A stretch of 64,000 nucleotides of DNA from positions 742,807-806,806 of the forward strand of contig NW_005434655.1 of the NCBI RefSeq assembly GCF_000315625.1, read 5' to 3'. Every line of letters starts with the position of its first letter. Position 1 is the first letter of the stretch. This DNA comes from Guillardia theta CCMP2712 (Eukaryota; Protista; Cryptophyta). The translations under genes and the position numbers were made by a program. This document shows positions 10,320 through 32,779 of the stretch, piece after piece. The notes under the pieces were generated by a model. It was not told the DNA's origin. It saw only the letters and a program-made list of their open reading frames with translations, and searched no databases.

Positions 10320-10750
10320 AGTGTATTTTAATACAAATCCTCCGTAGCAGTGTTTGTACCTGTGATTGACACCGGTGTCAATGCCTTCGATCTTATGGCG
10401 TCATGAAGGTAGGGTTATCTGCTGTATATCTACCCCCTTTATCGACTGTCGACCCATACCACCCGTATAGGGCTAGGTTCAAATTTTTGTACCAAAGAGA
10501 GCTTGTACACCGGTGCTTTGCTATGCAGAAGTATGATCTCACTGGGAGGTGGGGGTACTTTTAGTACCCTACCCCACATTTTACCTCAAAAAGTATACCA
10601 CCCCTATAGGCCCATATTCAAATTTTTGTACCAAGAAGAGCTTATGTACCGGTCCACATCTATACGGATTTATGTTTCAGTATGTGGTAGGGGTAGTCTG
10701 TAGATGCTCTCCACCCCCTCTTTGATGGCCAAAAGTATATCACCGGTGGT
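10320..10750. repeat. Degenerate ~139-bp tandem repeat upstream of the transposase-like gene
   Basis: ATACCACCC(G/C)TATAGG...TTCAAATTTTTGTACCAA...ACCGGT at 10456 and 10595, with partial copies on either side. Confidence 0.7.
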
Positions 10751-10763
10751 CAGGGGCTCCCGC

Positions 10764-10771
10764 TATATAAA
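10764..10771 (+). promoter_or_regulatory. Possible TATA box
   Basis: TATATAAA about 100 bp upstream of the ATG at 10871. Confidence 0.35.
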
Positions 10772-10870
10772 TCTTTCCTCTTGCCGCCGCGGTCACACTG
10801 CCAGGCCTTGTTACGAACTTTGGTTCAAATCTTGATCCTACATTTGAATCTTTAAGATCCGATTACAGAG

Positions 10871-13537
10871 ATGTTTCTACCAATTCATGCAAAAGAACCC
10901 TCTCTCAAGAAACGCAGAACATCACATTCTATAAAACTTTCTGGATCTTCTCTAGATTACATTGAGACGCTTGCATCGAAAGCGAAATGCGTTTTTGGGA
11001 GGAGGAGCAAGCGTTGTGGTGAGCCAGATGTTACTTCTTTCTTGAAAGGGTTGGGTAAAGATGGTACAAAATCGATTCCTCTTGTGAATCCTTCGTTCCA
11101 TGATGTATGGGAAGAGGTCAGGGCAATTTTGAACTTGCCAGCAGATTTGAATCCCAAGTTTTTCAGCGAGATCACCGACCTTGAAGCTCGCCTGCAATTC
11201 ATAAAGAAGTTTCAAGAGTATGCCTCTCCCGTGCTTGACCTTCTTATGCAAATCGTTGTATCCATATTCGACTTATTAGGTAAAACGCATGAGGAGCATT
11301 TGAAATTTTTAGCTTACCTCTTTATCGACGTTGACACGTTATTGGAGGAGGCAAAGGCGGCAAAGGTAAACCTTGATTGCAATGGTACCCCTGAAAATGG
11401 TGCTCCTCAAAATGACAGTTGCAATCGTGCTGATGAAAATGTCACCAGAAACTGTCAGAATTTAAGTGGCAATGGGTCTTCTGAAATCCTCCATGATAAT
11501 GCAGAAAAAGAAAACGACTGTGTCAATGGAAACAAAGAAAATGCTGGAAACAATGGTAGTGGGTCGAAAACCTTCAAGGGGAGAAGTACGAAAACGAACA
11601 AGTATTCCCCCGAGAAAATAATGGTTGGGCTTGTCAAGAATAGAATGTTCAGAGACTGCATAACTACACAGATAAGGACCAATCTTCATGTACAAAGGAA
11701 ATTGAAATACATTGCCAGTGCTTTCCTTCCAGATGTTCATGAGGCAGGTTGTCTTCTATTGAAGGCCAACCTGTCTAAACAATCATACAACGTGTTATAC
11801 AGGACGCTCGGACGTACAAAAAGATTGGTTGTATCAATGAAAAAAATTGGACGAGCTAGAGTTATGAAGAAAAGGTGGTTGAAAGATGCATTGAAAGCCT
11901 TCAAGACTGACCAAGGAAGTTACGGAACGGATCTATTGTCATCGCTGAAAATGCAAGTGAAAAAGAAGGGATTTCACAAGAAGAAACGCATCATTGTCAT
12001 TTTCAACACCGATGCCACTGTTCTTGCAAAATCTAGTGGATGTGATACAAAACATACTGAAATTACGTATACTATTATCATCCCAAGAGATGAATGTGAC
12101 CCAGATGAATGGAATGAAATTGAAGCATGCATCAGATCAGCATTCGATGCTGCAACTCTCATGATTCTGCCAGTCGGCGATAACGCCAAGAACATGAGGT
12201 TTAATTTCTGGGAGCCCTACGAGCCAAAGATCTTGGACTTGATGCAGAATGGTTTGCGGATTGGTGACGATGTCATTGACGTAGAGGTCATGTTCAGGGC
12301 AGATCTTGCAGGTCATTATGGATTGCTTGAGTTTGGAGGTGTGAGTGATGCCTCCGGCAAGTTTTGCATTCACTGTGATGAGACTAAAGAAGCAAAAAAG
12401 GCGGGCAGGTTCATCGTTCTTAAGCAGAAGAAAGAGGAGGAATCAATCACACTTCGACAATTTTGCAAACGATATAAACTGCTTCCATCTGACATTGAAC
12501 TCCTGAATAAGATGCTCAATTGTCTGGCTGAAACCTCAGATATGACACAATCTGGATTCATGGATCCTGCAGACGTTGGAGAAGATGTATTCCAAACATT
12601 CTTTGAACCATGGAACCAGGAAGCGTTGAGAACTTGTTTCCAACACCCAGACAGCTTGATCCCAGATGGTGTAGTGTTGCCTTGCCTCCATTTTTGTCAG
12701 ATTTTGAGAGAGTGCTCTCGTTTGAAAGATGCCAATCTCAGGACAATTAACTTCATTTACTGCATGTTGCATATGAAGCTCCGCTTCGTGAACTTGTTGG
12801 TCAACTACATTTATGAGCTGGCAGCGAATCAGTCGCAAGTGTCAGCTGTGAACAGAATTCTCCAATCGTTTCATGTCAACATGGAGATGAAGGCGAAAGA
12901 TCAACAAAGACAGCTGAATGGCAAGATGTGCAAACGATTCTTGAAAGCTTTCCCTGACCTTATTGCCTTGCTGGTACCCGATGAGGATACACGTGAACAA
13001 TGGAAAGTAGCGATGGATCAATGGACACATGTGCACGACGTACTATCTTGCCAGCACTACGATAAAATTTCGAAATCAGATGCAGAGGAACTGCCGACAC
13101 AAATCAGAAGCTTTTGTGTGAAGATGATCAACTTGGTAGGAGATGCAAAACGACTGCAAAGTTTTTACTTCCACAGTATGATGATCGGGCACATCGGCGA
13201 GCAATTCGAATATCTGTACAAGGAATATGGGATTCCTCTTGGATTGCTTAGCTTGTCGGCGATCGAAAAACGTCATGAAACACTTGGAAGAAGATGTTTT
13301 AAGAAAGCTATTCCGGAGATTAACTTGTTTACAAGTGGCAAGAGCACTAGCATTTTGCAACCTGACACATCCAAGGAAGACTCCAAAGGAGCGCGTGCAT
13401 TTTACACACTGTTCAACCTTCTACTGCACTCGTTTGAGGGGTGTGACGAAAAGGATCAGGGGGATGCGGTGGTGATGCAGGACTTGCAAAGTGCAGTAGC
13501 AGAATTATTCGATGATGAGGATATGAATGACCTGTAA
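10871..13537 (+). CDS. RAG1/Transib/Chapaev-like DDE transposase, 888 aa, intact
   Basis: Ordered motifs FNTD381A, FRAD478L, FC499IHC502, CMLH634MKLR, LNGKMC, YFH768SMMIGH774 and SAIE799KRH follow the order of RAG1 D600, D708, C727/C730, H795, H937/H942 and E962. The ORF is intronless and paralogous to 28350-30692. Confidence 0.75.
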   Translation: MFLPIHAKEPSLKKRRTSHSIKLSGSSLDYIETLASKAKCVFGRRSKRCGEPDVTSFLKGLGKDGTKSIPLVNPSFHDVWEEVRAILNLPADLNPKFFSEITDLEARLQFIKKFQEYASPVLDLLMQIVVSIFDLLGKTHEEHLKFLAYLFIDVDTLLEEAKAAKVNLDCNGTPENGAPQNDSCNRADENVTRNCQNLSGNGSSEILHDNAEKENDCVNGNKENAGNNGSGSKTFKGRSTKTNKYSPEKIMVGLVKNRMFRDCITTQIRTNLHVQRKLKYIASAFLPDVHEAGCLLLKANLSKQSYNVLYRTLGRTKRLVVSMKKIGRARVMKKRWLKDALKAFKTDQGSYGTDLLSSLKMQVKKKGFHKKKRIIVIFNTDATVLAKSSGCDTKHTEITYTIIIPRDECDPDEWNEIEACIRSAFDAATLMILPVGDNAKNMRFNFWEPYEPKILDLMQNGLRIGDDVIDVEVMFRADLAGHYGLLEFGGVSDASGKFCIHCDETKEAKKAGRFIVLKQKKEEESITLRQFCKRYKLLPSDIELLNKMLNCLAETSDMTQSGFMDPADVGEDVFQTFFEPWNQEALRTCFQHPDSLIPDGVVLPCLHFCQILRECSRLKDANLRTINFIYCMLHMKLRFVNLLVNYIYELAANQSQVSAVNRILQSFHVNMEMKAKDQQRQLNGKMCKRFLKAFPDLIALLVPDEDTREQWKVAMDQWTHVHDVLSCQHYDKISKSDAEELPTQIRSFCVKMINLVGDAKRLQSFYFHSMMIGHIGEQFEYLYKEYGIPLGLLSLSAIEKRHETLGRRCFKKAIPEINLFTSGKSTSILQPDTSKEDSKGARAFYTLFNLLLHSFEGCDEKDQGDAVVMQDLQSAVAELFDDEDMNDL

Positions 13538-13568
13538 ATAGACGATTCTTGAATTTATTGAATGAAAT

Positions 13569-14711
13569 TTAATGTTCTGATTGTGTCTTTGGCCGAGGAT
13601 ATGACCACATGAGTTTGTTTGTGAATCCTAATCTCACAATCTTGGAGAATCTGAACGTGATGGTTGTCTGTGATGTTGAGGATCTGTGTCGAGAAAGTTT
13701 CATTGGCAACATGATATGTAGAGGTCCTTCAAGATAAATGCATCCTCGAGCTGGTCCAAGGAAATAAGGGTTTTCTTTCAAGGGAATATTCAGTTCTTGT
13801 TTGAACAGAGGTGTACAGAGCAAGTTTGAATCTAGAGTCCATGTACACTGCGAGCGCGTCGAAAGACCTGAACACGTTACTTTTGACGTTTCCATCGAAA
13901 AGTGCTTCAAGAAGAACAGTATAGCGCTGAAATCTTGTATAGGAGCATCGAATGCGAGGCGCTTTGCCTTCCTTGGGTTCCAGGTAGTCGATCCTCTTTT
14001 GTCCAACCACTTGTGCAGTTCCTCGCGTAACACACCGAGGACATTGGTAACTTTGAAAAAGTCATAAGCTGATGCAAAATTATCAAAGTACGAGTTGAGC
14101 ATGGTTGAAGATAAGCGAAAGCTCTTAAAGTATTGAATGTGACAACGCTCCTTCCTCTGGACAGTCTCGAAGAAGATCCATCCTACCACACAAACACGCT
14201 GTATCGATGGCGGCCCAAGCGTCAAAGAAATACATGGATACGTCACATTGAAAACTCTGAAAACATCGGATATTGGAACTACATCCGTGTAAGTGCTTTG
14301 AAAACACTCGTGCGGTGACATCCCGTCAAGAAAATTTGTGTTTCTCATCTCATTGTTCATTGAAAGCTTTTCAAAAACTTCTTGAATGGTTGACTTATTG
14401 TACAGAAGGAAAACTTTCAACGAATCACCAATGATATGCGTAATCATCCCAAATCGTTCTTTTCTATCGACATCAAAAAAAGCGACACCAAGAAATGGCT
14501 TAAGCATAATGTCACAGTTCCAAGATTCCATATGAAATTGAAGAGTGTTCTCTTGAGCTGGAGGTATAGAGGCTGATAGAAGAAGCGGGATTTGAACAAT
14601 AGTTGGAACATTTCCAGGCTTCTCGTTAAGTTGGACTCGCCTTTCCCTATTGTCACTGAACCTTCTGCTTGCATCTGCTCGCTCTGCTGCCGTCCTGCGG
14701 ATTCTTGGCAT
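13569..14711 (-). CDS. Convergent partner protein, 380 aa, with a BAH-like N-terminal region and an unknown C-terminal domain
   Basis: Intronless ORF and clear paralog of 27034-28182 (shared WNPRKA.RL.FD and LF..EL.IPLK.NPY.LGPARG.IYLEGPL). ECFQSTYTDVVPISDVFRVFNV resembles the C-terminal motif of BAH domains. Confidence 0.7.
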   Translation of the reverse strand: MPRIRRTAAERADASRRFSDNRERRVQLNEKPGNVPTIVQIPLLLSASIPPAQENTLQFHMESWNCDIMLKPFLGVAFFDVDRKERFGMITHIIGDSLKVFLLYNKSTIQEVFEKLSMNNEMRNTNFLDGMSPHECFQSTYTDVVPISDVFRVFNVTYPCISLTLGPPSIQRVCVVGWIFFETVQRKERCHIQYFKSFRLSSTMLNSYFDNFASAYDFFKVTNVLGVLREELHKWLDKRGSTTWNPRKAKRLAFDAPIQDFSAILFFLKHFSMETSKVTCSGLSTRSQCTWTLDSNLLCTPLFKQELNIPLKENPYFLGPARGCIYLEGPLHIMLPMKLSRHRSSTSQTTITFRFSKIVRLGFTNKLMWSYPRPKTQSEH

Positions 14712-15765
14712 ATTGATTGGATTCAGAGCTAGAGGAGGAGGGGAACTTAAGTTCGTAGTAGCAAGGATGAAAGCAGGGGGTCTCGGAATATATTCGGAAG
14801 GATGGAAGGAAGGAGGAGGAAGAAGGGAAGGAAGGAGAATGCGGAGGGGCGGGGAAGGAAGCGAGCAAGTCTGTTCAAATTATAATATTGTAAGTTACGA
14901 CAAATTGTACCTGATAAACGTTAAGGAAACATGTGAAAAATACTTTTACGAGAGTATTTCAAAACAAGCTCCATTTCTCAATATGAAATTTGAAACTTCG
15001 GTGAAACCAGAAACATGACCCCCCATTTCCCATACACTACCCCCAAGACCCCAACTTCCAGAGAAAGCCCCAGAATGGTGCATGTCACGCCGGCCCGGAT
15101 AGCCGCTGAGTCCAGTTCAGTGACAAAACTCTTCCGACCATACTCCGACGCCCCTTACTATGTGACGCGGACTTCTCATGTCTGGATGCTTCGGTTTCAC
15201 ACGAGTCCGTGTTCCTCCATACAAGTCTAACTTGCCCGGCCGCACTGGCTGGCAGGCCCTTCGGAAGTTCACCAGGCCCGGGCCGGGCCTGGTGAAGGGG
15301 GACTCCCGGAGTCCGGCAAGAGAGTCTGCCCGGCTTGGCCGGCCCCGGGGGGCCCCGCCGGCAAGTTCCCTGGTCGCCGTCACAGGGGCGGCGCCGCGCC
15401 TTCGGAGACTCATCGGCAGCATCTTCATCCGATGAACTTCGGAACCGTCAGTCGGAGTCGGAGGGTGAGCGGCTGCCGGTCTCGTAGCTGCCGCGGTTGC
15501 GGCTGCTGAGCGGCTTGTCCCCGACAACCGTCACCGGGAAGGGTACGGAAGTTCCGTGGCAGTGGCACTAGCCTCCTGTCGCAGCCTGGTCTTACGGCAA
15601 TTCATGGGAGTCCCACCTACAGTACGTACATTGAGTCATTCTCGTTCATACTGTACTATTCACGTATTCAATAGTAATCAACACTTGGTTCACATTATCT
15701 CTATAGCTGACATCACCCTGACTTCGGCCGTGGCAGCAGCGGGTTCACTGTGTGATGCTTTTGCT

Positions 15766-17294: not shown

Positions 17295-18859
17295 CGATGA
17301 ATGTCGTAGTTAGCCAATATGGATGAAATAAACTCTGTTATTCCATGATCATGGTGAGTACTGTACCAAACAGCGATGGCGTGATAGTCCCTTTCGTTAA
17401 ATCTTGACCTCAAGTCGATTCCTCATCATCCAGGGTAATGGTTTGCTTGCTTCGTCTGCAGGAACTTCCTTGCAAAGGTGGGGATGACGAATTTGATAGA
17501 TTTGGTCCTGACATGATTAATCAACGTTTCAATGTTCAAAATCCCAAGTCAAATTGCAAGATCACACTGGCATGTGTCTCAACTTGTGCAGAGGCAACTT
17601 GCCTCTGGGAAAAATTCAATTCCCTGAAATAGGGATGGGTGGGGGACAGCGGGGACTACCCTACCCCCGATTTGTGAAAGCACTAGGTGGGTCCGGTATA
17701 CTGTTAACAGTTAGGTCTCTGGTACAAATTTTAACTGTTAACAGTTAACCGTTTTTCAACGGTTTTCATCTAACTGTTAACCTTTAATCGACAAAGGCCT
17801 CCCCTGGGAATCCCGGACTCCCCGGGGAGTCCCTTTTTCGAGCCCTCATACAGCCCCCTTGGAAGGGCATAAAGGCGGGGAAAATGGCAGGGGAAGGAAG
17901 AGGGGAGGAAGAACTTTCCAACGCTGAAATTCGCGTTGCAAACGACCAACCCGTTGTCGAGATAGGACAGGAGATAACTGTGAAAAGTAAGCATGCCGTT
18001 CACAAACCCATATGCAGCCCCTAGCAAATCTGGTCTTTTTTTTTCTACTTTTTTTGGGGTTCACATGGGGTCCGTATATACACTCCCTGTTGACTACCCC
18101 TTGTTTTCACCGATCAAAGGAGGGGCAGAGAGACTGGACATAAGCGGGGTGGGGTGATTTGAATTCCTCTGGCGTGGAACCCTTCCCCCGCCTTGGTTTT
18201 AGAGGTACTGCAATTTTAGTTTTACCCATCACGTACATGGTAGTATAGATTGTACTGTATGAAGACATATTGGTACAAAAGAGAGGTTTCATGGTACAGA
18301 AGTTCCCCCCTCCACCACCCTACCCCCTTTTTATCTCCTCACAGAGGATATTTGAATCCACAGAGAAATCCCTCAATGCTCACTGTTATGAATACTCACT
18401 GTTATGCGCATCCACCAGTCATTTATGTCGCATGACGTTTCTTCCTCAACAGCATCCCGTCACTGTGCGCTGGAGGAACGGGCTTCCTGGCAGTCTCCTC
18501 TCCATCAGGACTCGTCGGAGATTCTGTTCCTGGAGCCGCCCCTGGTGTTCGGCCTATGCATACTAGAGCGGACAAGTACGTGCAGCCGGGGTGGGAGCTG
18601 GAGAACGCTATCAGGGATGCGACTAGGCTGGCACCAAGAGCTGAGGAGGCTAGTCGTCCTCTTCTACGCTGGCCATGGGATGAAGGCAGGAAGGGCCAAA
18701 GAAGACGACCTGATCCCCTGTGAGGTAGGGACGATGGAGACCGAGGAGGAGGTAGAGGACTACACTGTGACTCTCAGTCTGTTTCCTTGTTGTCATCGAT
18801 GCCTGCAGATACCGGGAGGGTCTGCAGGAGACGGGACGGCTGCTCCCGCAGCAGGCGGC

Positions 18860-19386
18860 CAAAGACGTCCTGCCTCTATCATTCAACTGCTGGTGCCTGA
18901 CAGAGACAAACAGCTTCTTTGGGAGGAAGCTATTTCGAAATTGAAGAGAAGGAAGACGTCAGGGGTGTTGCTTTCAAGTTGCTTTCAAGTCGGACAAGCG
19001 AGACTGCTGCAGTCTTTCTATTTGCACAGCGGCATGATGTCAGGGCATGTGGGCGATCAGTTTGTACATTTCTACGAGAAATATGGCATTCAACTAGCCT
19101 GACTATTGAACATGTCGTGCATCGAGCATCAACATCAACTTCAGGGAAGAGATGCATATCGAGCTGCTGCCATGATCGGGAACAGCTACATTGGACTCGG
19201 AAAAGAAGGAAGCTGCTACTGCATCTAACGGGCAACTTGACCATGTGTGGGATATGCACTGTCCGTGCGGTAGTCACTGATGGACCTTCACGAAATGCAG
19301 ATGACAAGAAGAAATTCAACAATTCGGTTCGAGCACACTTCACTTTGTTGTGGCAGCTCCTTCAAAGTAAATTAATGTCTGAGTAA
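18860..19386 (+). pseudogene. Decayed C-terminal fragment of the RAG1/Chapaev-like transposase
   Basis: QLLVPD..., LQSFYLHSGMMSGHVGDQFVHFYEKYGIQLA*LLNMSCIEHQH and (frameshifted) VRAHFTLLWQLLQS align with the C-terminus of the 888-aa protein. Confidence 0.75.
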
Positions 19387-20096
19387 AGTCGCGTTCAATC
19401 TGGATGCCTCCAAATCTCTGTGTGAAACGTGCACAATCGTACCATTCTCTCGAACTTGAAAGAGATGCATGTGTATTGCGTCCTCTAATTTCGTTTTCAA
19501 TTTCGTTTCAAGGTGACTGTCAGTGCGCCCTCGAAACTTGAAATATAACGAACCTGATCCAGGTTCTATCGTGTAGGGTTCATCCTTGAAAGGCACAGGA
19601 AATTCTCTGTTAATGACAGGATTCTGTAAGAGTGATGTACTGATGGTCCAACTGCACTGGCCTTTTCATCCGGGGTTTCAAGAAGGGCTTCCCACGTTTG
19701 CGAAACCAGTTAACTATACTACCGTAGTCCTAATCTTGTGCAGATCGATGTTGAGACGGAAGAAATCAGTTTGTTTTCTAGTGTTAAAGAAGTTGACATT
19801 CTTCCTTTCCAATTTCGGATGATTCCACTTCGAAATTTCCCATTGACATCAGTAAACCTCACACCATGACATGGTACCAGATTGAATGACATGTCTAAAC
19901 CTTCAACGTGGTGTAGTAATTCAAAGTGCACAGAATGATCGAAGGCATTTGCTGCAAGGAACAACGGTGCCCCTTGGATGTATCTCATGCGAATGAAGAG
20001 GATCAACTTGTTCTCTTGCTCCAATCTCCTCCTTTTGGCAATGCCGAGCGATGAGGCAGCCCTTGACGACGGTGGCCGCCCCGATTGCGCCGCCAT
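19372..20096 (-). pseudogene. Decayed copy of the convergent partner gene
   Basis: AKRRRLEQ..., DMSFNLVPCHGVRFTDVNGKFRSGII and PFKDEPYTIEPGSGSLYF match the 380/382-aa proteins; frameshifted and internally deleted. Confidence 0.7.
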
Positions 20097-20335
20097 TGTC
20101 CGTCAAGGCAAGGACTGAGGATTGCAACTGGTACTGAAAGTAGTACCATAGGGTATGTGTCGGTACCGTACTGTAACTACCGTTAAAATAACTTGTAAAG
20201 AGGATTGTTGAAATCAACTAAAACAAATGGGTACTATGAAGTGGGGTCTCTAACTCGTTTATCAAAATAGCACGCCTAGAAAAAAAAAAGACCCTACCGA
20301 AAAATTTAAGTGCCAAATTAACGAAAGGCCTGAAA

Positions 20336-22580
20336 GTGAACGGCATGATGTTTGGCCGTTTCAGGCCTGCAAAGAGCATTCTCATGGGCATGCATAGATG
20401 CGATTGGAACTCCGTCGCGATAACTGGAAAGGTGATAGCGAAGTGTGGGAATGGTAGATGGATGGTTGATTGGTACTTGCCTGGTGAAAGAATGAAAATT
20501 AGCGTCTTGGAGAGTACCTTACGATCCACATTGTTGCCTGGGGAAATGCCAAATTTGCAAAATTCTACCAATGTTTCCGCTGCCCGCGATGTAGCCGCGT
20601 CCGATGACGCTGGCTCTAATGATGTAGTGGTGTCTCATCATGACCCTGTCCCTATGCAAGGGGAATCAAACCATGAAAATGATTCCTCTTCGCCTATGAC
20701 CATCAATTGCAATTTTGGAGAAAATGTCCTCGTTTGGCAGTTATCACCGACTGGTGTTGCAGAAGATCAACGACTGTCAAGTGGATTTGCAATGCGCAAA
20801 ACTGTGATTCGCTGGACACCAGCTCTGCAGATCCTTGACGAGAAAACTCCATTTGATTGCTGGAAATTTCTGCTTCCGTGGAAGTATTTTTTCGGAGATT
20901 GTGACGAAACTGGATGTTGTTTGCTCTGGACGAACAATTCTTTGCCAGCAAATGTGAAACCGTTCACTGTACATGAATGGCTTCAGTTCATGGGTGTGCT
21001 GTTCATGAGAACTCTACATCCACACGGTCCAATAAGGAGTTTATGGGGCAGCGATTACGACTCTGCCAGTCCGCCTGTTGATTTGGGTAAGCGCTTTGGA
21101 GTCAGTCGTTGTCGATTCGAACAATGGCGAAAGCACATAAAATTCGCTCCTCCGTATGCATACATTACAGACAATGCTTTTAATTGTATCCGACCCCTTA
21201 TACACGCTTTCAATGCGAACAGATTGCAAACAATTCGTCCTGGATCTGAATTGATTTTGGATGAAAGCATGGGTAAATGGATACCAGTTGCTGAGGTATC
21301 CTACCATATTGTGTTGGAAATTTGTGTGACTGACTTTGTATGAAGGACGTTGATGATGGAATCCCATTTCTAACAAAAATTGCCCGAAAACCACAAGGTA
21401 TTGGCAGTGAGTACAAGAACATTGCAGAGTGTACCTACGGAATTATGTTGCAGCTGGAGTTACAAGAAGGCAAACGAGTGATGGAGAATCAAGAATTTAC
21501 TGATCAATATCCGAAGCATACATCATGGGTTCTCAGATTGATGAATCCTTACTTCAACCAGGGTCACATTCTTTACGCAGATTCCGCGTAAAGAATGTGC
21601 GTAAAGAATGTGACCAGATTCCGCGTGATTAACGCGTTATATGAAGACGTTGAATATTTTCTCCTGGAGCTTGGCCAATACTTTCGATCCTATCTGAAGC
21701 CATTATTTCCTGTTCCATGGGCTATGTCAGGAGGATTCAAGTCCAAGTTGGCTCCGATCAAAGCTCTGGCGTATATGATATGGGAAGTCAGAAAGCGCAG
21801 TGGGAATCTCAATGCCACTCCGGATAAAACGCGGATGGAGCTTCTGACGCTGGCAAAGTCGAAATTGCCTGACATATCTACCTTCCACAGCGTTATGGTC
21901 CAGATGAAGATCCTGCTTAACAAGTTGGAAGATGTAGCGGGAGAGGAATCAGTGAAAGCCTTGGAAATGATTTTGGTGGAGGAGCTGATCAAGCAATGTT
22001 ATCTCTCAGATTGTGCCGATATTCGAGATGTCGCGCGCTTGAATAAGCGGTCCAAGTTGTCAACCGAATTGACTTGGGAGGAGGTGTACTCTTGGGCTGT
22101 AAATTTGAATGAGTTTGGCATTGATTCAACGATGTCGATGACTGATATTCAAGGAATGGCAATGCAAATTCGGTGAATACCAGAAGAAACCGATCGGAGG
22201 CTAGTGCAGTAAGAGGTGCTACGAAGACCGTATCAACTTCATGGCAGCATAATGGCAGGGAAATGTTCATTTTCGGGCATGCATGGAATGAACCTGGCAG
22301 GCCTGATACCCCAAGAAAACTTCTCATTTCGACATGGAATACAACAGAAGAAACCGATCCCCATTTGAAAATTCGGTATCGACGGAAGGGTCAGCCAGGA
22401 ACAGGGAAGAAAAAAACACTGTCAACGCCAAGAACGGCCATGATCAAGTCATATTTCAACGGAGCATCTGTGATCGATGTGCACAATCACCTGAGACAGA
22501 GTGGACTGGGACTGGAAGAAAAAGTTGGAACTCATGACTGGAGATTCAGAATGTTCTGTACGATACTTGGGTTCGTTGAA
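20336..22580 (+). mobile_element. piggyBac-like (DDE_Tnp_1_7 type) transposase, disrupted
   Basis: SRCRFEQW, LILDESMGKW, KIARKPQGIGSEYK, LYADSA and YFNGASVIDVHNHLRQ. Probable intron at ~21296-21345; interrupted at ~21590-22170 and truncated at ~22580. Confidence 0.8.
21626..22169 (+). repeat. Inverted copy of a Copia gag segment (source 22733-23275) inserted in the piggyBac-like ORF
   Basis: Near-identical peptide INALYEDVEYF...IQGMAMQ in ORFs 21595-22176(+) and 22449-23612(-). Confidence 0.9.
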
Positions 22581-23630
22581 ATTACAATTAATCTTTCCTC
22601 CTGCCGTCATGACAAAGAAATCGTCTCCCGATTGTACGTCTGAGAGGAGGGATTCGTCCCCAACCATGGTAACATTTGCACCAGAATCAAGCAAAAAATT
22701 GACAACCCTTCCGTCACCGTCTCCTACCATACTTTGCATTGCCATTCCTTGAATATCAGTCATCGACATCGTTGAATCAATGCCAAACTCATTCAAATTT
22801 ACAGCCCAAGAGTACACCTCCTCCCAAGTCAATTCGGTTGACAACTTGGACCGCTTATTCAAGCGCGCGACATCTCGAATATCGGCACAATCTGAGAGAT
22901 AACATTGCCTGATCAGCTCCTCCACCAAAATCATTTCCAAGGCTTTCACTGATTCCTCTCCCGCTACATCTTCCAACTTGTTAAGCAGAATCTTCATCTG
23001 GACCATAACGCTGTGGAAGGTAGATATGTCAGGCAATTTCGACTTTGCCAGCGTCAGAAGCTCCATCCGCGTTTTGTCCGGAGTGGCATTGAGATTCCCA
23101 CTGCGCTTTCTGACTTCCCATATCATATACGCCAGAGCTTTGATCGGAGCCAACTTGGACTTGAATCCTCCTGACATAGCCCATGGAACAGGAAATAATG
23201 GCTTCAGATAGGATCGAAAGTATTGGCCAAGCTCCAGGAGAAAATATTCAACGTCTTCATATAACGCGTTAATCATCGCGGCATCCATCTCCTTGCCATC
23301 AGAATCCCTTCGGCTTACCCCCTTCTTTTTCTTCTTGCCAGAAGCACTCACTGGATTGCCGGAATCACCGTCATCAACGGGACTACCATACTGATCCGAC
23401 ACCGTCTTGGACAAATTTTGCAACTGCTCCACATAATCTCGAATCTGCCCGCTCTTCCTCCAACAAAATTTGGCATTCAGGAAAAGCAAAACGACCAACT
23501 CGCCATCCACATTCACACTCTTGTTCTTTTCCCATACAGTATGAAACTCACCACCAAAATTACCGAGTTGATCGAGTGGAAACTCTCGTATCAGCGGGCC
23601 CGGGCCAAACACAAGCCCAATCCATTCATT
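22581..23630 (-). mobile_element. LTR retrotransposon gag + aspartic protease fragment (Copia-like)
   Basis: FLLDSGANVTMV protease motif after a helical gag-like region; adjacent to a Copia RT. Confidence 0.65.
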
Positions 23631-23744
23631 GCATTCTGAATCGGAAGCAGAAGTTCATCCAATTCCTCCTGTGACGTCACAGATCCTTTGAGAAATTTTC
23701 ACGTGAGCTTAAATTCTTGGGTTCAGAGGCAGTTGGACATGATT

Positions 23745-24789
23745 AAATACGGTCTACAAATATGAACACAACGGTTCACGACTTCTTCTTACGACATGGG
23801 TGGATGATCTTCTTATTGTGTGTGAAAATCAGGAAGTATGTGATCATTTTCTGAATCAGCTGAGCAAGGTATTTGATTTTTCTGGAAGTGAAGCCACTGG
23901 TACATTTCTTGGGATTCGTGTTCATCAAGATTTAACGAAAGGGACTATCACGCTGAGTCAGAAACATTTCATTGAACAACTGATTGACAAGTTCGGAATT
24001 CCTCTGCGTTCAGTGTTTACGATCCTTCCTGGTTTGTACATGCGGACTTATCATCTTGAAGGAGAATTGCTAGACAAATCTGCAGTGCGGCAGTATCAAG
24101 CACTTCTTGGGACAATTCTGTATATCGCAAATGGCACAAGAGCAGACATTGCCTTCGCTGTTAGTCTTCTGAGCAGATTTTCGAGAGCGCCCAGAGCTCG
24201 TGATTGGGAGGCGCTGCTACATCTCGCGAGGTATTTACACACTACAAGAGACATTTGTATCGTTTATCACAACAGAGGAGTATTTGTGAATCAAGAAATC
24301 CTTCACAATCAGCTGGTGGCAGCTAGCGACAGCGACTGGGGAACTGATGTTTTGACAAGGAGGAGTCAATCTGGCTACGCGATTGTGATGAACGGAGGTG
24401 TAATCTCATATGGATCCAAGGCACAGAAAGTTATCTCCTTGTCATCGTCAGAGGCAGAAATTTATGCTACCTCTGTAGTTGCCAAACACGTCAAGATGTA
24501 TCGTAACTTGCTACAGAAGTTGGGGTTTCCACAGTCCGGCCCGACGATGTTGCTCCTGGATAACGAGCCCTGTATCCGTTTGCTGACAGAGAAGAGAGCT
24601 TATTCTCGGTTGAAACACATAGATGAAGGGGATCTGTTACCTGTGAAGGTGCCTACAAAGTTTCAGCCTGCGGATTTGTTCACAAAGATTTTGCCATTGA
24701 CGAGATGGAAAGCAGTGAGTTCTTTTCTCTTTGGTGAAGATTTGAATTACTTTGCCTTGGGAAGTCATGGCGACGAGCTGGATGAGTGA
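23745..24789 (+). mobile_element. Ty1/Copia reverse transcriptase C-terminus + RNase H fragment
   Basis: WVDDLL, FLGI, YQALLG..LY, TRADIAFAV, SDSDWG, SSSEAE, DNE, KHID and QPADLFTK. Confidence 0.9.
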
Positions 24790-27033
24790 CACATCTCTGC
24801 TTACGATTATGAGTGCGTGACTCATTAGGTGTGCAAGCTTGGGGGGTGGAACAATGTTGGAAAGAAGGATTCTTGTCAGCCAGGGTGGCGCAGTTGCAGG
24901 ACATGGGGGGAAAGATTTTCTACAGAATCAAAGCAGTATGATTTCTGTCGCAACTGTGTGCTGACTGTAGTTGTAGAGACTGCCTGGAGACAGCGCTTTG
25001 GGAGCAACTTTGAACTTCAGTGGGATTTATCCCAGCTTGAATACAATGGGGTTCATCGTACAGCTGGTATCAACGAGCAATCGCCTGCACCAATCTCTGA
25101 TTCAGGGAGGGAGAACCTTGGAAGGAAGGTTTGATATTGAGAAGTAGAATCAGATGATTGGCATGGCGTGGTATCAAGCTTCTTCTCCCGAAGACTGTTC
25201 AAGGAACTCTAGGTCAAGTCAAGCAGATTAGGATGTGAAGCCTCCCATCATGATCGCAAGATACAAGACCTATGATCGCAAGAATTGAAATGAGAATTGA
25301 AATTGATGAAAAATCGGCCGTTAAGAAATTGAGAAATTGAAAATGAAGAGATGATTGATGGGGAAAGGCAAATGAAAGAAGATCATATGGTCAATATGAG
25401 AATTGAAATGAACATGCATGCAAATGAAATCTCAAGAGCTCTCAGGTGAAATGGCGCCAAATCAATCTTTCATACCGCGGTTAGATAGCGATTTGTTAGA
25501 TGGGCCCGTAGAGCAGGATAGTTAGGACAAACACATTGGTCATGAATGAGGTGGACATCATTGGGTGGAAAATTTGGATTGAGAAAGTCAGATGGGTGAC
25601 AATTGAAATCGGATGGGATTTGAAGCACAATGATGGGATGGATGACGAGATGATCAGAAAGGTGTCTGGGGAGCCTGACTGATCAGAGGGGAAGCCTGAC
25701 GAACAAGTGCAGTGCGGCACAGTCGAGTTCAGGTGGTGGAGGAGTGTTGATGGTACTGACGAGGTTTCTATGAAGGAGAATATGTAGGTAAAAGATGGAT
25801 GGAAGGAGCTTGGAGCATGGACTGAGGAGGATCTAGGGGGAAGAAGCAGCTTTGATCTTGGAGGACGAGATTGCGATTCAGGAAGACGCAGGGAGGAGCT
25901 TGCGTGGAGGATGCAGGAAGCTTGATGGAGGAGAAGGTGATGCAGGAAGGATGCAGGAAGCTTGGAGGAGGAGAGCGCGGTGTTGCAGCTTGGAGGAGGA
26001 GAGCGCGGTGTTGCAGCTTGGAGGAGGAGCAGGGAGATGTTTAAAAAGGGGGTTCCCAGAGGATGAAGGATGAAGTGGAAAAGGAAGCTGAGAATCTCGC
26101 TGAACTTCGTCAGGGAGGGTGTAAGAACTCGGATAAGTTCTTGGAGACGGCGAGAAGTTCAGGGTATTGCGTCTCATCGGTGGACAAAGCTCAGCGAGAT
26201 GGAAGTGGGTTTCGACATAGGTCTGGAATTAAGGAATCGACGAGCCTGAGGGTCAGGCGGAGAAGAGGGGGTTAGGAGGACACGTGTCCATTGCGCGCTG
26301 TGCATTGTACTGGGTTACAAGGGACTGAAGGGAAGGTGACTGCTGTGAATAAAGGAAGTGTTGGTGGTGTTGTGTGGTTCTTCTGAGAGTTCTATCACCA
26401 TCAGTGAAGGTGTTAGAGACTGCACAGCTGTGTATCGTTGAGGTGAATAAGGTTGGTGTGAGGATCTCAGGTGTACTGAGAGTTAGTCTTTGGTGGATCT
26501 TGGGTTAAACAGAATTCTGGCCAGTGAGGTGGAGGTTGATTCGATTAAACTTCAAATCCGATCAAATTAAGCACCGCGATTGTTTCATCGCGGTTAGTTA
26601 AATTTAAAAGTTAGATTTTTAAACTCCCCTGGTGAGCCCCCCTGACCCGCCTTGGCTCCATGCTGCCCCTCCCGCACTGCGGCGGCATAAGTCGCCCCCA
26701 ACGCGCTGATCATCAAGAGCAATGCTCCTCTTACTGGGTTATCCTATGATACACATCGATAGCATCCAATACACCGTAAAGTGCACTTTCTCAATCCATC
26801 ACATTCTGTAGGATTTTGCTAAGGTACGCCTTAATTCTGTGTATAGGGTAGTCGCTGGGAAATAAGGGGTGGTATCTTGGTTTGAATATTAGTACCAGAT
26901 AATTTCAGATGGTCTCAAATCTAGATTGAAAGTGAGGTTATAAATAATTTTAGTCAGGGATAATAGTACAAATTAAAATATTCTTATTTCCGTCTCTGAG
27001 GCTCTCCCCCAGACACCTACCTCCTTCATCGGC

Positions 27034-28182
27034 ATGGATCGACGCAATGCAGCTGCAGATGCGGACTTGAAAAGAAGAAAGCTGGAGCAGAGAGATCATG
27101 AGACAGGGCTAAATATCCGAGAAAGGGTAGTTGGTGAATCTAGAGCGCAAATCCCCCTATGCTTTGCATCACTTGAGGCTTCAGATGTCTTGAATGCTCC
27201 TAAATATTTCTCTTGTGACTGGGACATGGAGTTTGATTTGATTCCTTCTGTTGGTGTCTTTTTTCACGATGTGCATAAGAAGCATAGATGCGGATTGATC
27301 AAGGAAGTCACTGCAGATAAAATGCTTGAAGTGTATGTGCTGTACAGCAAAGAGACTTTGACGGAAGTGTTTGAGAACATTTCCCAAGCCGACAAGCGAA
27401 GATATCGCAGATATCTCGATTCCATGCAACCCAACGATTGTTTTCAGAGCATCTACACTGATATTCTTCCACTGGCTGATGTGGTCGGAATATTCAAAGT
27501 TACATTTCCTTTCTGTTCTGTCCAAAGTGCCATTCAGAGTACTCTACAACATTTGCGTGTGATCGGATGGCTTTGTTTTGAAAATGTGAACAGGGACGAG
27601 CGACTCCAAATGGGGTTCTTCCAAAAATTTCGTCTGACAGCTGATATGCTGCACTCATATTTTGGACAACCAGGAAATACGATCGATTATTTCAAAACCT
27701 CTACAGAGCTTGGGATAATCAGAGACACTCTAAAGCGATGGCTCAATGCTCGTGGAGCTGTTAATTGGAATCCAAGGAAAGCAAGGAGGCTTGACTTCGA
27801 CATTCATATTCCTGTATTCAATTGCATACTTGCCTTATTGCAAAAGGTCCCAATTGATGACAAGCTTGTTACGTGTGCGGGATCAGAAAATGGGAAACAA
27901 TTCACTTGGTGCATAGATGCAGAATTGTTGAAAACTGCTTTGTTTCAGAGAGAGCTGCACATCCCTCTCAAAGCGAATCCTTATGATTTAGGACCTGCGA
28001 GGGGCACTATCTATCTTGAAGGTCCGCTGTATTTTACACTCGTTTCCAAGCCTAGCTTGAACGTCGATCGAGCTGTAATTAAAATGAAATTTTCGAGAAT
28101 CGTGCGATTAGGCTGGAATAATGAAAATAATCTGGGAATTCCCAGACCCTTGACTCTTTTGGCGCTTCGTTTTCTCCGATGA
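27034..28182 (+). CDS. Convergent partner protein, 382 aa (paralog of 13569-14711)
   Basis: Colinear similarity to the 380-aa protein over nearly its full length; basic NLS-like LKRRKL at the N-terminus; BAH-like DCFQSIYTDILPLADVVGIFKV. Confidence 0.7.
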   Translation: MDRRNAAADADLKRRKLEQRDHETGLNIRERVVGESRAQIPLCFASLEASDVLNAPKYFSCDWDMEFDLIPSVGVFFHDVHKKHRCGLIKEVTADKMLEVYVLYSKETLTEVFENISQADKRRYRRYLDSMQPNDCFQSIYTDILPLADVVGIFKVTFPFCSVQSAIQSTLQHLRVIGWLCFENVNRDERLQMGFFQKFRLTADMLHSYFGQPGNTIDYFKTSTELGIIRDTLKRWLNARGAVNWNPRKARRLDFDIHIPVFNCILALLQKVPIDDKLVTCAGSENGKQFTWCIDAELLKTALFQRELHIPLKANPYDLGPARGTIYLEGPLYFTLVSKPSLNVDRAVIKMKFSRIVRLGWNNENNLGIPRPLTLLALRFLR

Positions 28183-28349
28183 TTCTCCCTCCCTTAGTGC
28201 TTTGAAGGAGAGTGGAGGGGATAGAACGCAACATACGTTTACAACGCAGCATACGTTCTAGTAAACGTATGTTCATCGGATTAAGAAGGAGAGCAGAGGG
28301 GAAAGGACAAACGATACAGATTAGCCGCAACATACATTTACTAGAACAA

Positions 28350-30692
28350 TCAGGTATGAACATCAGGTGTGCATTCGTTGAACGAGTGCAGAGCTAATTC
28401 AGACAGAGTGAAGTAAGACTGACAATCCTTCCTTGTTTTCTCTCCTGCTCCACACGGTCCATGTTCACTCAGGCTTTCGCCTTGCTGCTTCCTTTTCCCG
28501 CTCATTGCACAATTAATGGCTGGAATCGAGGTTTTGTAGCTGTGACGTCCCAAAAGCTGATGACGTCGTTCTACACAAGACAAACTCATCAAACCCATTG
28601 GGATTCCAAAAGTATTCCACAAATAGGTAAATTGTTCTCCAATATGACCCACCATCAGCGAGTGCAGGTAGTGACTCTGCAATTGCTTGGAATCTGCGAT
28701 GAGACAGATGATTTTTGTACACCAACTTCTGATTTCGATTGGTAAATTCTGAACATCTTCGCTGCTGATAGCTTCTGAATGCTGGCATGACAAAACTGTG
28801 ATTATTTGTTTCCATTGCTCAATAGCACTTCTCCACAATTGAAGTTTTTCACCATCTGGAACCAACGAAGAAATAAGTGTATCGAAAATACGGATAAACT
28901 GATCGCACTGAGGTCCGCTCAGATTCCTTTGCGAATCCTTGTCCTTCAATACGATCTTGATATTGTTGTCAGCCAATAGCTTGTTGATTGCTGACAACTT
29001 GGACCTGTTTACTGCCAGGTGCACGACGTGATTTACCAACATGTTAACAATCCGAATTTTCAGATGCAACATACAGTAAATGAAATGAATAGTGTCAAAA
29101 TTTAGTTCTTCAAGATAGCGACATTTTCTGGAGATCTTCACAGAGCGCAGCAATGGAAGGGAAAGTCCGGCAACGTCAATTTTTTCATCGGGATCTGCGA
29201 AGCATTGATTGAGTTTATCTTGATTCGAAGTCGATGCCAAAGCCTGGAACAGATGCTCGTTGAAATCTTCAATTAGGTTCGTCAAATTGGAACTGTTGGT
29301 TTTGAGAATCATGTCGTTCAGTAGCTTAACACTAAGAGGATCTGTACCATGCATCCTGCAAAGTTCTCGGAAGCTGACTGGCCCACCATTTATCTCCCGA
29401 ATTTGGAGGAACTTTCCAGATTTCCGATCTGAAGTTTGTTCACAACAATGAATACAGAAAGTACCGTCTGAGTCGTTTCTGCCCCCGTGACTTAGCAGAG
29501 AATTTTGTCCCATTAAATCTGCTCTGAAGAACAAGACAAATTTGATGGTAGCATCCCCTATCTTCAAACCATCTCTGAGAATGGATACTATGTCAGGCTG
29601 ATAGGGCTCCCAGAAATTGAATTTCAGAGTTGCTGTAGTGTCTGACAAAGGAATTATCATTAGGGTACAAGCGTCCGAAGCTTGTCTTATGCGCTTTTCC
29701 TCTTCCGCCCATTGCTGAAGATTTTTGCAATACTTCTTTGGAACAAACACCGTGAAACTAATTTCTGTATGCTTGGTGTCTCCACCGAGATTCCGGATAA
29801 GCAGCGCAGCATCTGAGTTCAAAGTCATAGCAATGATGTTCTCACGGTCTAGGCCAAGTTGCTTGAGTTTCATGGTGAGACTAGTTTTGAGACTGAGTCC
29901 ATGGCCATGGTCTCGAGTGGAAAACATCTTCAAGTTTTTCTTCAGCCAGATTTTCTTCATGACCCTCGTCTTACAGATTAGCTTCGCAGAAACTGCAACC
30001 CTCTTCAATCTTTTCACGTGTGAATGATACGCGATGTAGGACCTCATAGGCATTCTGGATGCATGCACTCCAGTACATGCTTCATTGACATTCGGCGCGT
30101 ATGCTCGGGCAACATATTTCAATTTCTTTTCAAATTTTTCGTCGGTAGGGATTTTTGTTTCAATGCACTTCTTGACGTTCTCATTCTGCATTAGGCCAAG
30201 GATAACTTTGTCAATCAACAAAGGGTTCATCCTTGGCGACACATTTGACTCTTCTCGTGGCCGCAAGCAATTTCCAAGACGTTTCCATAGCTCTTCATGC
30301 GGTAGATCTTTCACTCCATGAATGATCGCTACCATCTGCAACACCTTCAACAAAACTGGGACCATGTATTCATTATATGCAATTTCCAACGCTTCTTGCG
30401 CCTCCGGGTCTTCGACATAGTCAAAATTGATGGGGTTCTCGTGGTGAGGCTTTGAAATTTTCGATTGAATGTCTTGCCAAAACTGATCAAACGTCTTGCA
30501 GGGAGGCGCGATTGGCCAATCGGTCAGATTTTCGCCCACGCTATTCAAAAATTTGCCAATGTGCGGCTGCCCAGGACACTTCGAATCCTTAGTGTAAACG
30601 AAATTTCTCACTGCAGCATGTTGTTCTATGCAGCGCAAAGCATTTCCTTGTATGAGCACCCTCTTCGCTCGTTCGGCATCATCATGAGACAA
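28350..30692 (-). CDS. RAG1/Transib/Chapaev-like DDE transposase, 780 aa, intact
   Basis: LNSDA, FRADL, FCIHC, YCMLHLKIR, LSGPQC, YLHSLMVGH and SCVERRH, all conserved with the 888-aa paralog. Confidence 0.75.
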   Translation of the reverse strand: MSHDDAERAKRVLIQGNALRCIEQHAAVRNFVYTKDSKCPGQPHIGKFLNSVGENLTDWPIAPPCKTFDQFWQDIQSKISKPHHENPINFDYVEDPEAQEALEIAYNEYMVPVLLKVLQMVAIIHGVKDLPHEELWKRLGNCLRPREESNVSPRMNPLLIDKVILGLMQNENVKKCIETKIPTDEKFEKKLKYVARAYAPNVNEACTGVHASRMPMRSYIAYHSHVKRLKRVAVSAKLICKTRVMKKIWLKKNLKMFSTRDHGHGLSLKTSLTMKLKQLGLDRENIIAMTLNSDAALLIRNLGGDTKHTEISFTVFVPKKYCKNLQQWAEEEKRIRQASDACTLMIIPLSDTTATLKFNFWEPYQPDIVSILRDGLKIGDATIKFVLFFRADLMGQNSLLSHGGRNDSDGTFCIHCCEQTSDRKSGKFLQIREINGGPVSFRELCRMHGTDPLSVKLLNDMILKTNSSNLTNLIEDFNEHLFQALASTSNQDKLNQCFADPDEKIDVAGLSLPLLRSVKISRKCRYLEELNFDTIHFIYCMLHLKIRIVNMLVNHVVHLAVNRSKLSAINKLLADNNIKIVLKDKDSQRNLSGPQCDQFIRIFDTLISSLVPDGEKLQLWRSAIEQWKQIITVLSCQHSEAISSEDVQNLPIEIRSWCTKIICLIADSKQLQSHYLHSLMVGHIGEQFTYLWNTFGIPMGLMSLSCVERRHQLLGRHSYKTSIPAINCAMSGKRKQQGESLSEHGPCGAGEKTRKDCQSYFTLSELALHSFNECTPDVHT

Positions 30693-30720
30693 TTCAGGTT
30701 GAGGTTGAGCAGTTGAGAGC

Positions 30721-30979
30721 TCAGGCTGAGAGCTTGGGTGCTCACTCGAGTCAGGCTGAGAGCTTGGGTGCTCACTCGAGTCAGGCTGAGAGCTTGGGTG
30801 CTCACTCGAGTCAGGCTGAGAGCTTGGGTGCTCACTCGGCGAGTCAGGCTGAGAGCTTGGGTGCTCACTCGAGTCAGGCTGAGAGCTTGGGTGCTCACTC
30901 GAGTCAGGCTGAGAGCTTGGGTGCTCACTCGAGTCAGGCTGAGAGCTTGGGTGCTCACTCGAGTCAGGCTGAGAGCTTG
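30721..30979. repeat. 30-bp tandem minisatellite, 8 full units plus a partial one
   Basis: TCAGGCTGAGAGCTTGGGTGCTCACTCGAG repeated; one unit has a 3-nt insertion; degenerate copies extend to ~31050; no spacers. Confidence 0.95.
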
Positions 30980-32779
30980 CCAGGCGGCCGGCGCGGCAGT
31001 GAAGGCGGCGGCGGCGGTGCTCAGGCTCAGAGCTTGAGAGCTCAGGCTGAGAACAAGAATCTCTCTACCATCATCACCCCAATCTGATGCCTGGTGCGCT
31101 TCAAAACTCGTTTGACTTCCAGAATCTGTACTAGTGCGTGGACGATACCCAGCCCGCGCAAATTCAAATCCCCAGCTTTTTCAAATAAGTGTCCACGTAC
31201 CGGTGGTTTGATACACGACTAGGGGGTAGGGTTTGTTCCCCACCTACCCCGGTGGCCATAACCTCACAACAGGACCGGTGCATAGTCAAACAAAGGTACT
31301 GTATCAATTGTTTACAGTACAAATATGTATAAACTTTGTACATATATATACATTTAAAATAAAATAATACGAAGTATGGTACAATTATGCCTAACTATGG
31401 TACCAAAAATCTGTACCTTTTATTTGAACAAAAATACAAGCATTAAAAACAAATTCAACGACCGCTCTGAAACCAATCTACCACCTCTACCCCCCCAAAT
31501 CCAGTGATAATGACGGGTCATTACCTATAACCGGTACTAAGACCCAGAGAACTGAGAAAAGCCACTTTTCCTTTGTTTTTCCTGGTCAAAAACCTACAGA
31601 ATGTCACGTTGAAAGATTTCACGTCAAGATCCGATGTATTGCTGCTGTCAATCGAGTTGGATCATAGCTATCCAAGTTTATTCAAAAGCTAGCACTGATT
31701 ATTCCAGGGACAGCAACAGGTCTCTCAGACACTCATAAATACGCAACCAAGACGGACTCTGTCATGAGGAGGGTCGCAACGAAGACTGTCTGTCATGACT
31801 CAAACATGAGGTGATAGCGATGTCCTTCGGAAATGTCGGCTCAAGGTGAACACCATTTCGCAGATGTGAAGCTGATGATGTCGTGAATTCTAATTTCGCA
31901 GTCGGTGTATTCAAACTTGGTATGTTTGTCTGACTTTACATCGTCCGATGATGTGCATTGGTCATGTTTTTGAAAGCTATAGTTTGTCTGTAATAAAGTC
32001 ATTCTTACCGAGCTCTTATCATCATTTAAGCCCATGCCAGCTCACTTGTTTAAACTTAGAGATCTGTTCTGGTTGCCCTTGTGTTCGACATTGGCATCGG
32101 AAGCACCGGAAGTTGATCTGCGTTCGGAAGCATAGCATCTTGCACACATTTTTGCATGTACCGCCATTAAAATTTCACTCTTTTGGACGCATATTTTGAA
32201 AATTGATGACGAAAACGAAAATTTGCTGGAATACTGTTAACAGTATACCGGAACACTTTTCATGCTAACTGTTAACAGTAAAATAAGGCCCGAAAGAATT
32301 TAACTGTTAACAGTATACCGGACCCACCTACTAGCAGAAAAGGACCCGGTGGCTTCATTCTTGTACCAAACCCAGAAACACAGTACACATTGAATTTGAA
32401 TCAGGTACCAAAAAAATTGGAACATTTGTATTGAATTTCTAAGTCTTTTCTACTGTGTTTCCAATTTATATTTATTTTATGATTATTCGTATCTTTCTAA
32501 AACGTTTTCGCAGCCTTAAAACATGTCGTCTGTTAAAAGTTTCGAGGGGAGTGGAGTGGTCTTGAAGGTTTCCGCCCATGCCAATTCAAATACCCCACCC
32601 CCTATTACTCAATGATAATGGGGGTAAAAGGGTGCTTCGGTGCAAGGGCAAGTACCCGTATAAGTGCAGTCAAAAGTACCGGTCATGAAAAGCGCTAATC
32701 AACAATCCTGGATTTTCATATTCAGCTGCAGCGCCCCCAATCCGGGCCCGGCGGTGGGGGCCGCCGAGGCGGCAGGGGT

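Follow-up and report, generated by a model that had tools for sequence, protein, structure and literature searches.

The 64,000-nucleotide window of the Guillardia theta CCMP2712 genome analysed here (C19:742807-806806 of the 87-Mb assembly) holds two pairs of convergent genes, each made up of a predicted transposase gene (T) and a partner gene (P). We refer to the first pair as T1 and P1 in element E1, and to the second pair, our main subject, as T2 and P2 in element E2. The partner gene P2 occupies positions 27034-28182 of the plus strand and encodes 382 aa as it stands, with a predicted BAH-fold domain (residues 49-198) followed by a conserved C-terminal domain. T2 runs towards it on the minus strand, where the called part of the gene (28350-30692) is a 780-aa open reading frame (ORF) with a predicted RAG1/Transib-like core at residues 197-776. 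An initial annotation had described these ORFs as colinear paralogs of the first pair arranged in the same tail-to-tail geometry, and we found both descriptions to be accurate. T2 is colinear with the 888-aa ORF of T1 at 35% identity (E 7e-173) and P2 with the 380-aa ORF of P1 at 42% identity (E 2e-103). Both pairs are convergent, and in the second the two stop codons are separated by a spacer of only 167 bp (28183-28349). This spacer contains a 19-nt inverted repeat (28255-28273 and 28329-28347; RNA fold z-score -2.98), which may be a 3'-end signal common to both genes, and transcripts of such closely spaced convergent genes could overlap.

The second pair lies within a complete element of 4,802 bp, E2 (26802-31603), flanked by the target-site duplication (TSD) TCA at 26799-26801 and 31604-31606. 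Inverted ends of about 17 nt (CATTCTGTAGG[A/T]TTTTG) frame the element at 26802 and 31603: the left repeat, CATTCTGTAGGATTTTG, spans 26802-26818 on the plus strand and pairs with the right repeat at 31587-31603 on the minus strand, which reads CATTCTGTAGGTTTTTG in reverse complement. Empty sites prove the insertion. The 257 bp to the left and the 502 bp to the right of E2 adjoin at four paralogous copies of the host repeat (C11, C12, C222 and C68), and in all four the matches of the two flanks overlap by exactly 3 bp. In addition, similarity to E2 begins and ends at its exact terminal bases in five copies that sit in other contexts (C282, C46, C2, L068 and L069). The terminal heptamer CATTCTG is common to E1 (10145-15077) and to the C154 element, each with a 3-bp TSD of its own, so that such duplications were read in three elements (GTG in E1, TCA in E2 and AAC in C154). 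E2 is a discrete insertion nested within another repeat. Three further copies (C2, C12 and C116) have one internal deletion junction in common and carry stop codons in P; judged from their sequence, they are non-autonomous deletion derivatives.

The initial annotation called this copy intact, which holds only in part: T2 has lost its ATG to a 149-nt deletion accompanied by two smaller ones, and P2 carries a 1-nt frameshift near its end. The TTG start of the 780-aa ORF was called under a bacterial start rule and is an artefact, and the first in-frame ATG is codon 110 (30363-30365). The T2 frame is open for 904 codons in all, with an upstream continuation of 124 codons on the minus strand (30693-31064) that holds no ATG. 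We compared the damaged 5' end (31047-31126, minus strand) with the intact copies L069 and C282. The former is a metagenome contig that is 99.07% identical to E2 from the first to the last element base and, encoding an ATG-initiated T of 889 aa and a P of 372 aa, provides an intact reference; the latter is 99.7% identical over 3 kb. Relative to L069, the 149-nt deletion has its junction at 31119/31118 and takes away the ATG start, a 10-nt deletion falls within 31047-65, and a 1-nt deletion falls within 31090-31102. In P2, one extra A in the run at 28124-28127 (again versus L069) causes the conserved C-terminal EIIWEFPDP to be swapped for a 19-residue out-of-frame tail. The T2 N-terminal coding region also contains a 30-nt tandem repeat (30721-30979) encoding SSQPDSSEHP units, the number of which varies among near-identical copies: 8.5 in E2, five at the protein level in C282 and two in L069. 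The predicted T2 core (residues 197-776) and the BAH domain of P2 are free of lesions. Since a protein initiated at Met110 would keep the whole core, the T of E2 may possibly still be active.

The pairing of the two genes extends across the genome. Six-frame searches revealed T-like and P-like matches that are adjacent and convergent at no fewer than 20 loci, down to 22-25% identity. Among pairs with long ORFs, convergence is universal (15 of 15), and stop-to-stop distances range from -12 to 177 bp. The superfamily comprises at least nine old lineages in the genome, all with both genes tail-to-tail; members such as GUITHDRAFT_110778 are listed in the annotation as ordinary hypothetical proteins. 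We built maximum-likelihood (ML) trees of nine lineages over 674 columns for T and 375 columns for P, the comparison that the initial annotation had proposed for detecting independently shuffled partners. The trees agree: they share their clades, and their branch lengths differ little. In both, E2 branches as sister to (E1,(C154,C285)), with support of 100/99 for T and 97/96 for P, and its terminal branch measures 0.82 and 0.80, respectively. Pairwise identities of T and P also correlate (r 0.88, Mantel p 1e-4). The window's two pairs go back to separate insertions, each of a different old lineage, in keeping with the earlier view that they do not reflect a recent duplication; a local tandem duplication of the first pair is likewise rejected.

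Purifying selection acts on both genes between lineages. E2 and E1 are saturated at synonymous sites (proportion of synonymous differences, pS, 0.83 for T and 0.82 for P), with nonsynonymous proportions (pN) of 0.41 and 0.39, respectively. Because pS exceeds 0.75, pairwise dN/dS is not computable for this comparison, and we used an ML codon model instead (GY+F3X4+G4; eight lineages, ungapped columns only). It returned a dN/dS (omega) of 0.126 for T and 0.169 for P across the eight lineages, values that are approximate since dS is saturated and that lie far from the value of 1 at which the initial annotation would have been contradicted. For C154 versus C285, omega is 0.31 for T and 0.19 for P. 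Changes between E2 and L069 follow a different pattern: 4 synonymous and 16 nonsynonymous in T and 1 and 7 in P, an omega of about 1-2 on small counts. On these counts, single copies of one family look to decay neutrally after insertion. The unit under selection is the transposon, through copies still jumping, and not the host locus. Co-evolution of T and P under selection indicates that their pairing is real and functional for the transposon. The argument of the initial annotation that the pairing is functional is thus borne out by purifying selection on both genes, by congruent trees and by the convergent loci.

Outside G. theta, transcriptome-derived sequences of Hanusia phi include homologues of both T and P. 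They nest with E1/C154 to the exclusion of E2, so the E1-E2 split dates back at least to the separation of Guillardia E1/C154 from their Hanusia relatives. A profile search identified 136 T relatives in 1.84 billion representative proteins. The top relatives come from Guillardia, and the others are metagenome proteins that lack Pfam domains; when 19 distant ones were scanned against Pfam, the only matches were sub-threshold ones to DUF1280, in two of them. When the P profile was run in a word-index search, matches came only from Guillardia, Hanusia and one ENA contig. Metagenome contig L067 encodes a T of 868 aa together with a convergent P (E 6e-42), and on the much more distant contig L062 a T-like gene is accompanied by a convergent ORF of 511 aa, for which hhalign gives a match to the P profile (probability 92%, E 6e-7). 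L067, L068 and L069 are contigs of 4.8-5.0 kb from ENA project PRJEB17505, each holding a whole superfamily element, and two of the three are 98.6-99.1% identical to E2. Guillardia itself or a very near relative is evidently present in the PRJEB17505 samples. No TSD is seen in the flanks of L069, for which collapsed assembly is a possible reason.

The initial annotation had listed motifs in T in which every predicted catalytic and zinc residue is kept, and the family alignment upholds this: the D/D/C/C/H/H/E positions are identical in all members that cover them. More fully, D294, D392, C413, C416, C540, H543, H677, H683, E708 and H711 are identical wherever covered in a 13-member alignment, and within the motif FCIHC it is H415 alone that varies. 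D294, D392 and E708 are candidate catalytic residues, and C413, C416, H677 and H683 are candidate zinc ligands. An AlphaFold2 model of T2 (predicted local distance difference test score, pLDDT, 78.5) was compared with solved structures. The top 49 Foldseek matches are exclusively RAG1, HzTransib and amphioxus RAGL (E 3e-9 to 6e-5). With VIA-align, residues 197-776 reach a best Z of 20.4, with ~426 residues aligned at 3.6 Å, a score attained both against zebrafish RAG1 (6dbo, residues 480-1021) and against HzTransib 21-476. Mouse RAG1 461-1001 follows at Z 20.0-20.1 and BbRAGL at 18.7, and the best 35 rows are all RAG1, Transib or BbRAGL; the next folds lie well below (P element transposase, Z 12.2; Hermes, 7.7). 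By these matches, the predicted model has a RAG1-type core fold (pre-RNase H, RNase H, ZnC2, ZnH2 and C-terminal domains). T2 would therefore appear to cover the full RAG1/Transib core architecture, with an RNase H domain and the C2 and H2 zinc modules.

The P2 model (pLDDT 78.9) was compared with 48,161 chains. Its residues 49-198 adopt a predicted BAH fold: BAH domains take the best 19 places among these chains (Z 11.1 to 6.2), led by ORC1b (5hh7, Z 11.1) and DNMT1 (Z 10.4), and unrelated folds begin at about Z 5. Foldseek E-values against BAH domains range from 5e-6 to 1e-3. The sequence of P2 gives no Pfam match to the BAH model PF01426 at E<=0.1, and no kelch propeller occurs among the Foldseek, VIA or atlas matches of the model. 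The C-terminal domain is conserved across the family (P residues 200-372); for this part of P2 (residues 200-382) a feature search was blank, and whole-protein structure searches were filled by the BAH domain. Elsewhere in the genome, open frames of 300-411 aa at about ten loci align with P residues 8-241 (24-26% identity, E about 1e-6), including C12:578973-579704, C113:93128-93859, C169:60638-61369, C75:295605-296336 and C41:498220-498948. No T-like match was reported beside these loci, which may represent the host BAH family that gave P, or the partners of a more distant element.

The surroundings of E2 are rich in other repeats. An apparent 14.6-kb element at 17685-32329 is bounded by perfect inverted ends of 29-30 nt (AGGTGGGTCCGG...) and by a duplication of ACT, and its basic form measures ~1.1 kb. 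Its left end (105 bp) recurs in C11, C12, C222 and C68, where the flanking sequence of E2 begins no more than ~10 bp farther on. These compact copies identify 17685-32329 as a small repeat, like a miniature inverted-repeat transposable element, that was enlarged by nested insertions, and not as a carrier of two pairs. A third, non-autonomous member of the superfamily lies at ~17992-19800. A deletion derivative, it retains only the convergent 3' ends of T (18875-19168, plus strand) and P (19401-19665, minus strand). At the DNA level it shares 82% identity with the C17/C56 lineage, and at least 10 copies occur at 86-96% identity (C37, C14, C184, C84, C78, C128 and others). Immediately beside the host repeat, to the left of E2, is a 248-bp unit (26300-26547) with more than 30 genome copies at 88-98% identity. 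A 543-nt inverted repeat, with arms at 21626-22168 and 22733-23275 that are 99% complementary and 564 nt apart, overlaps a 387-aa ORF (22449-23612, minus strand). Finally, a 329-aa ORF at 23800-24789, within the insertion nest around E2, resembles by eye the C-terminal part of a Ty1/copia-type polyprotein.

We consider it very probable that E2 is a copy of a two-gene cut-and-paste transposon that encodes a RAG1-fold transposase and a selected BAH partner, and that represents a new lineage of the CACTA/Mirage/Chapaev/Transib (CMCT) clade. In the mechanism that we envisage, T would be a DDE transposase that cuts at the CATTCTG ends with a RAG1/Transib-like zinc-module active site. By analogy, it would nick the element ends and generate flank hairpins or double-strand breaks, and it would integrate the element with a 3-bp stagger. 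P would act as an accessory subunit needed for propagation of the element, its BAH domain binding nucleosomes or histone tails and its C-terminal domain contacting T or DNA. P would in this way play a RAG2-like role, coupling the cutter to chromatin via an unrelated fold. Because P is kept by selection via transposition success, it would be expected to contribute to propagation. Selection and predicted fold point to a chromatin-binding accessory subunit as its most likely role, to which we give somewhat less than an even chance, and an anti-silencing role is the main alternative. A more specific version, slightly less probable again and offered tentatively, is that this cryptophyte RAG1-fold lineage independently recruited an obligate BAH subunit that binds T via its C-terminal domain and tethers or licenses cleavage and integration on particular nucleosome states. 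If true, the RAG1-RAG2 design of a cutter joined to a chromatin reader would have been invented a second time by convergence, down to the tail-to-tail layout.

Several observations weigh against reading E2 as such a transposon. This copy is damaged in both genes. Pfam returned nothing at E<=0.1 for any of the four proteins of the two pairs, and in sequence searches of the PDB with T and P, profiles found nothing and single sequences only chance-level matches. The models of T and P were built on shallow alignments of 12-13 sequences, and the role suggested for P draws solely on selection and that predicted fold. The candidate zinc-binding histidines of T2 are spaced H(5)H, as opposed to H(3-4)H in the CMCT clade. 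Moreover, no recognisable P was found beside T in two of the three most distant metagenome relatives. This last result would also suit an account in which P is a passenger, a host BAH gene captured once by an ancestral element and linked to T by lying between the element ends, with an indirect use (for example, anti-silencing) or none; any cargo inside a mobile unit is expected to show linkage and congruent trees. However, a neutral passenger would not hold an omega of 0.17 with saturated synonymous sites over at least eight lineages, nor would one convergent arrangement with a short spacer be retained throughout. The branch lengths of P follow those of T almost one to one, and anti-silencing would still be a function for the element. 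We therefore regard a passenger as unlikely.

Two other explanations give the element a different identity. ProtoRAG and the vertebrate RAG locus likewise have convergent genes, the predicted fold of T is that of the RAG1 core, and language-model features point to RAG1 clusters, as would be expected if E2 were a true RAG/ProtoRAG member made up of a RAG1-like gene and an extremely diverged RAG2-like gene. We reject this membership as highly improbable given the predicted fold of the partner, which is BAH without a six-bladed kelch propeller or PHD, and the TSD of 3 bp in place of 5 bp; the termini are CATTCTG and not the CAC heptamer, and neither RAG1 nor RAG2 was matched in Pfam. Even less credible is the view that a cellular recombinase and its cofactor, domesticated as a pair of host genes, only resemble a transposon. 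Long open frames under purifying selection in both genes, and the annotation of family members as ordinary hypothetical proteins, would be in line with such a pair. It is rejected on the inverted ends, the TSD, the empty sites and the many dispersed copies, which are not syntenic and include deletion derivatives; near-identical copies differ as if neutral, and E2 has lesions in both genes. A two-gene transposon with a RAG1-fold enzyme and a selected BAH partner remains our preferred interpretation.

E2 fits best as a new lineage of the CMCT clade, and not as a ProtoRAG. With no sequence link to curated families, this classification is based on the predicted fold, the order of motifs, the termini and the TSD. 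The clade unites EnSpm/CACTA, Mirage, Chapaev, Transib, Plavaka and ESTA, as well as Lanisha, and is recognised by the motifs D, D, C(2)C, H(3-4)H and E, by 5'-CA...TG-3' termini and by TSDs of 2-5 bp, with 3-bp TSDs made by EnSpm/CACTA and PlavakaB (Kojima 2025, PMC12730594). T2 displays this order of motifs (D294, D392, C413-x2-C416, H677-x5-H683 and E708), but with a histidine spacing of 5 in place of 3-4 and with an extra invariant C540-x2-H543 beside the set. The termini of E2, CATTCTG...CAGAATG, are of the CA...TG form, its 3-bp TSD is within the range of the clade, the transposase is large, and a second gene is carried by many CMCT lineages. E2 differs from the clade in that its second gene encodes a predicted BAH-fold protein, which our literature searches did not find described for any lineage, and in that T has no sequence match to the Pfam models of any member. 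More broadly, literature searches (Repbase was outside their scope) found no description of this cryptophyte family or of a BAH partner for a transposase. The family is missing from Pfam, and its ends, its TSD and the intact L069 copy allow cryptophyte genomes to be annotated and a transposition assay to be set up.

Among individual members of the clade, EnSpm/CACTA shares the 3-bp TSD, but its CACTA or CAC..GTG termini differ from the CATTC...GAATG of E2. Transib offers the closest structural counterpart: HzTransib (Helicoverpa zea, 6PQX) ties with zebrafish RAG1 as the best match to T2 and has the same zinc-module layout. However, Transib elements encode one protein, make 5-bp TSDs and end in CAC-type heptamers, whereas E2 has two genes, a 3-bp TSD and CATTCTG termini, and no sequence similarity to Transib was detectable. 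The 3-bp TSD and non-CAC termini place E2 outside both Transib and ProtoRAG proper. There is no solved CMC structure among the PDB matches of T2, so the RAG1-like fold does not distinguish 'Transib-like' from 'CMC-like'.

Cut-and-paste elements with two ORFs are familiar from PIF/Harbinger, with its Myb/SANT protein, and from En/Spm, with TnpA and TnpD. These elements resemble E2 in combining a transposase with a second element-encoded protein needed by the element. Their partners are sequence-specific DNA binders, whereas that of E2 has a predicted BAH fold and its genes are strictly convergent. Chromatin-reader domains have also been captured by transposable elements, as in chromodomain Gypsy and PHD/Chromo fusions (Grau-Bove et al., bioRxiv 10.1101/2021.11.30.470311). 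E2 would likewise be a mobile element equipped with a reader of histones or nucleosomes, which plausibly serves targeting. In those elements, however, the reader is mostly a Chromo or PHD domain fused to the enzyme, whereas the BAH domain of E2 belongs to a separate, co-evolving gene.

RAG1 is the enzyme that assembles antibody genes, and RAG1-RAG2 is the textbook example of a transposase dependent on a chromatin-reading partner, a pairing whose origin is debated. The family of E2 places the same predicted transposase architecture beside an unrelated reader fold in a distant eukaryote, a pairing retained by selection through at least nine lineages and two genera. This suggests that RAG1-type enzymes repeatedly gain from a dedicated chromatin partner, and provides a second independent system for asking why. 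The likeness to ProtoRAG and RAG1-RAG2 consists of the RAG1 core fold in the T model (Z 18.7-20.4), of convergent genes inside inverted ends, which is a likeness of geometry only, and of P as a candidate accessory protein that reads chromatin, a role that RAG2 fills with its PHD finger. The differences are these: P has a predicted BAH fold in place of a six-bladed kelch propeller and PHD, and by its fold would not be a RAG2 homologue; the TSD is 3 bp and not 5 bp; the termini have no CAC heptamer; and the host is a cryptophyte alga. The pairing of T with P was evidently acquired independently of that in ProtoRAG and RAG1-RAG2.

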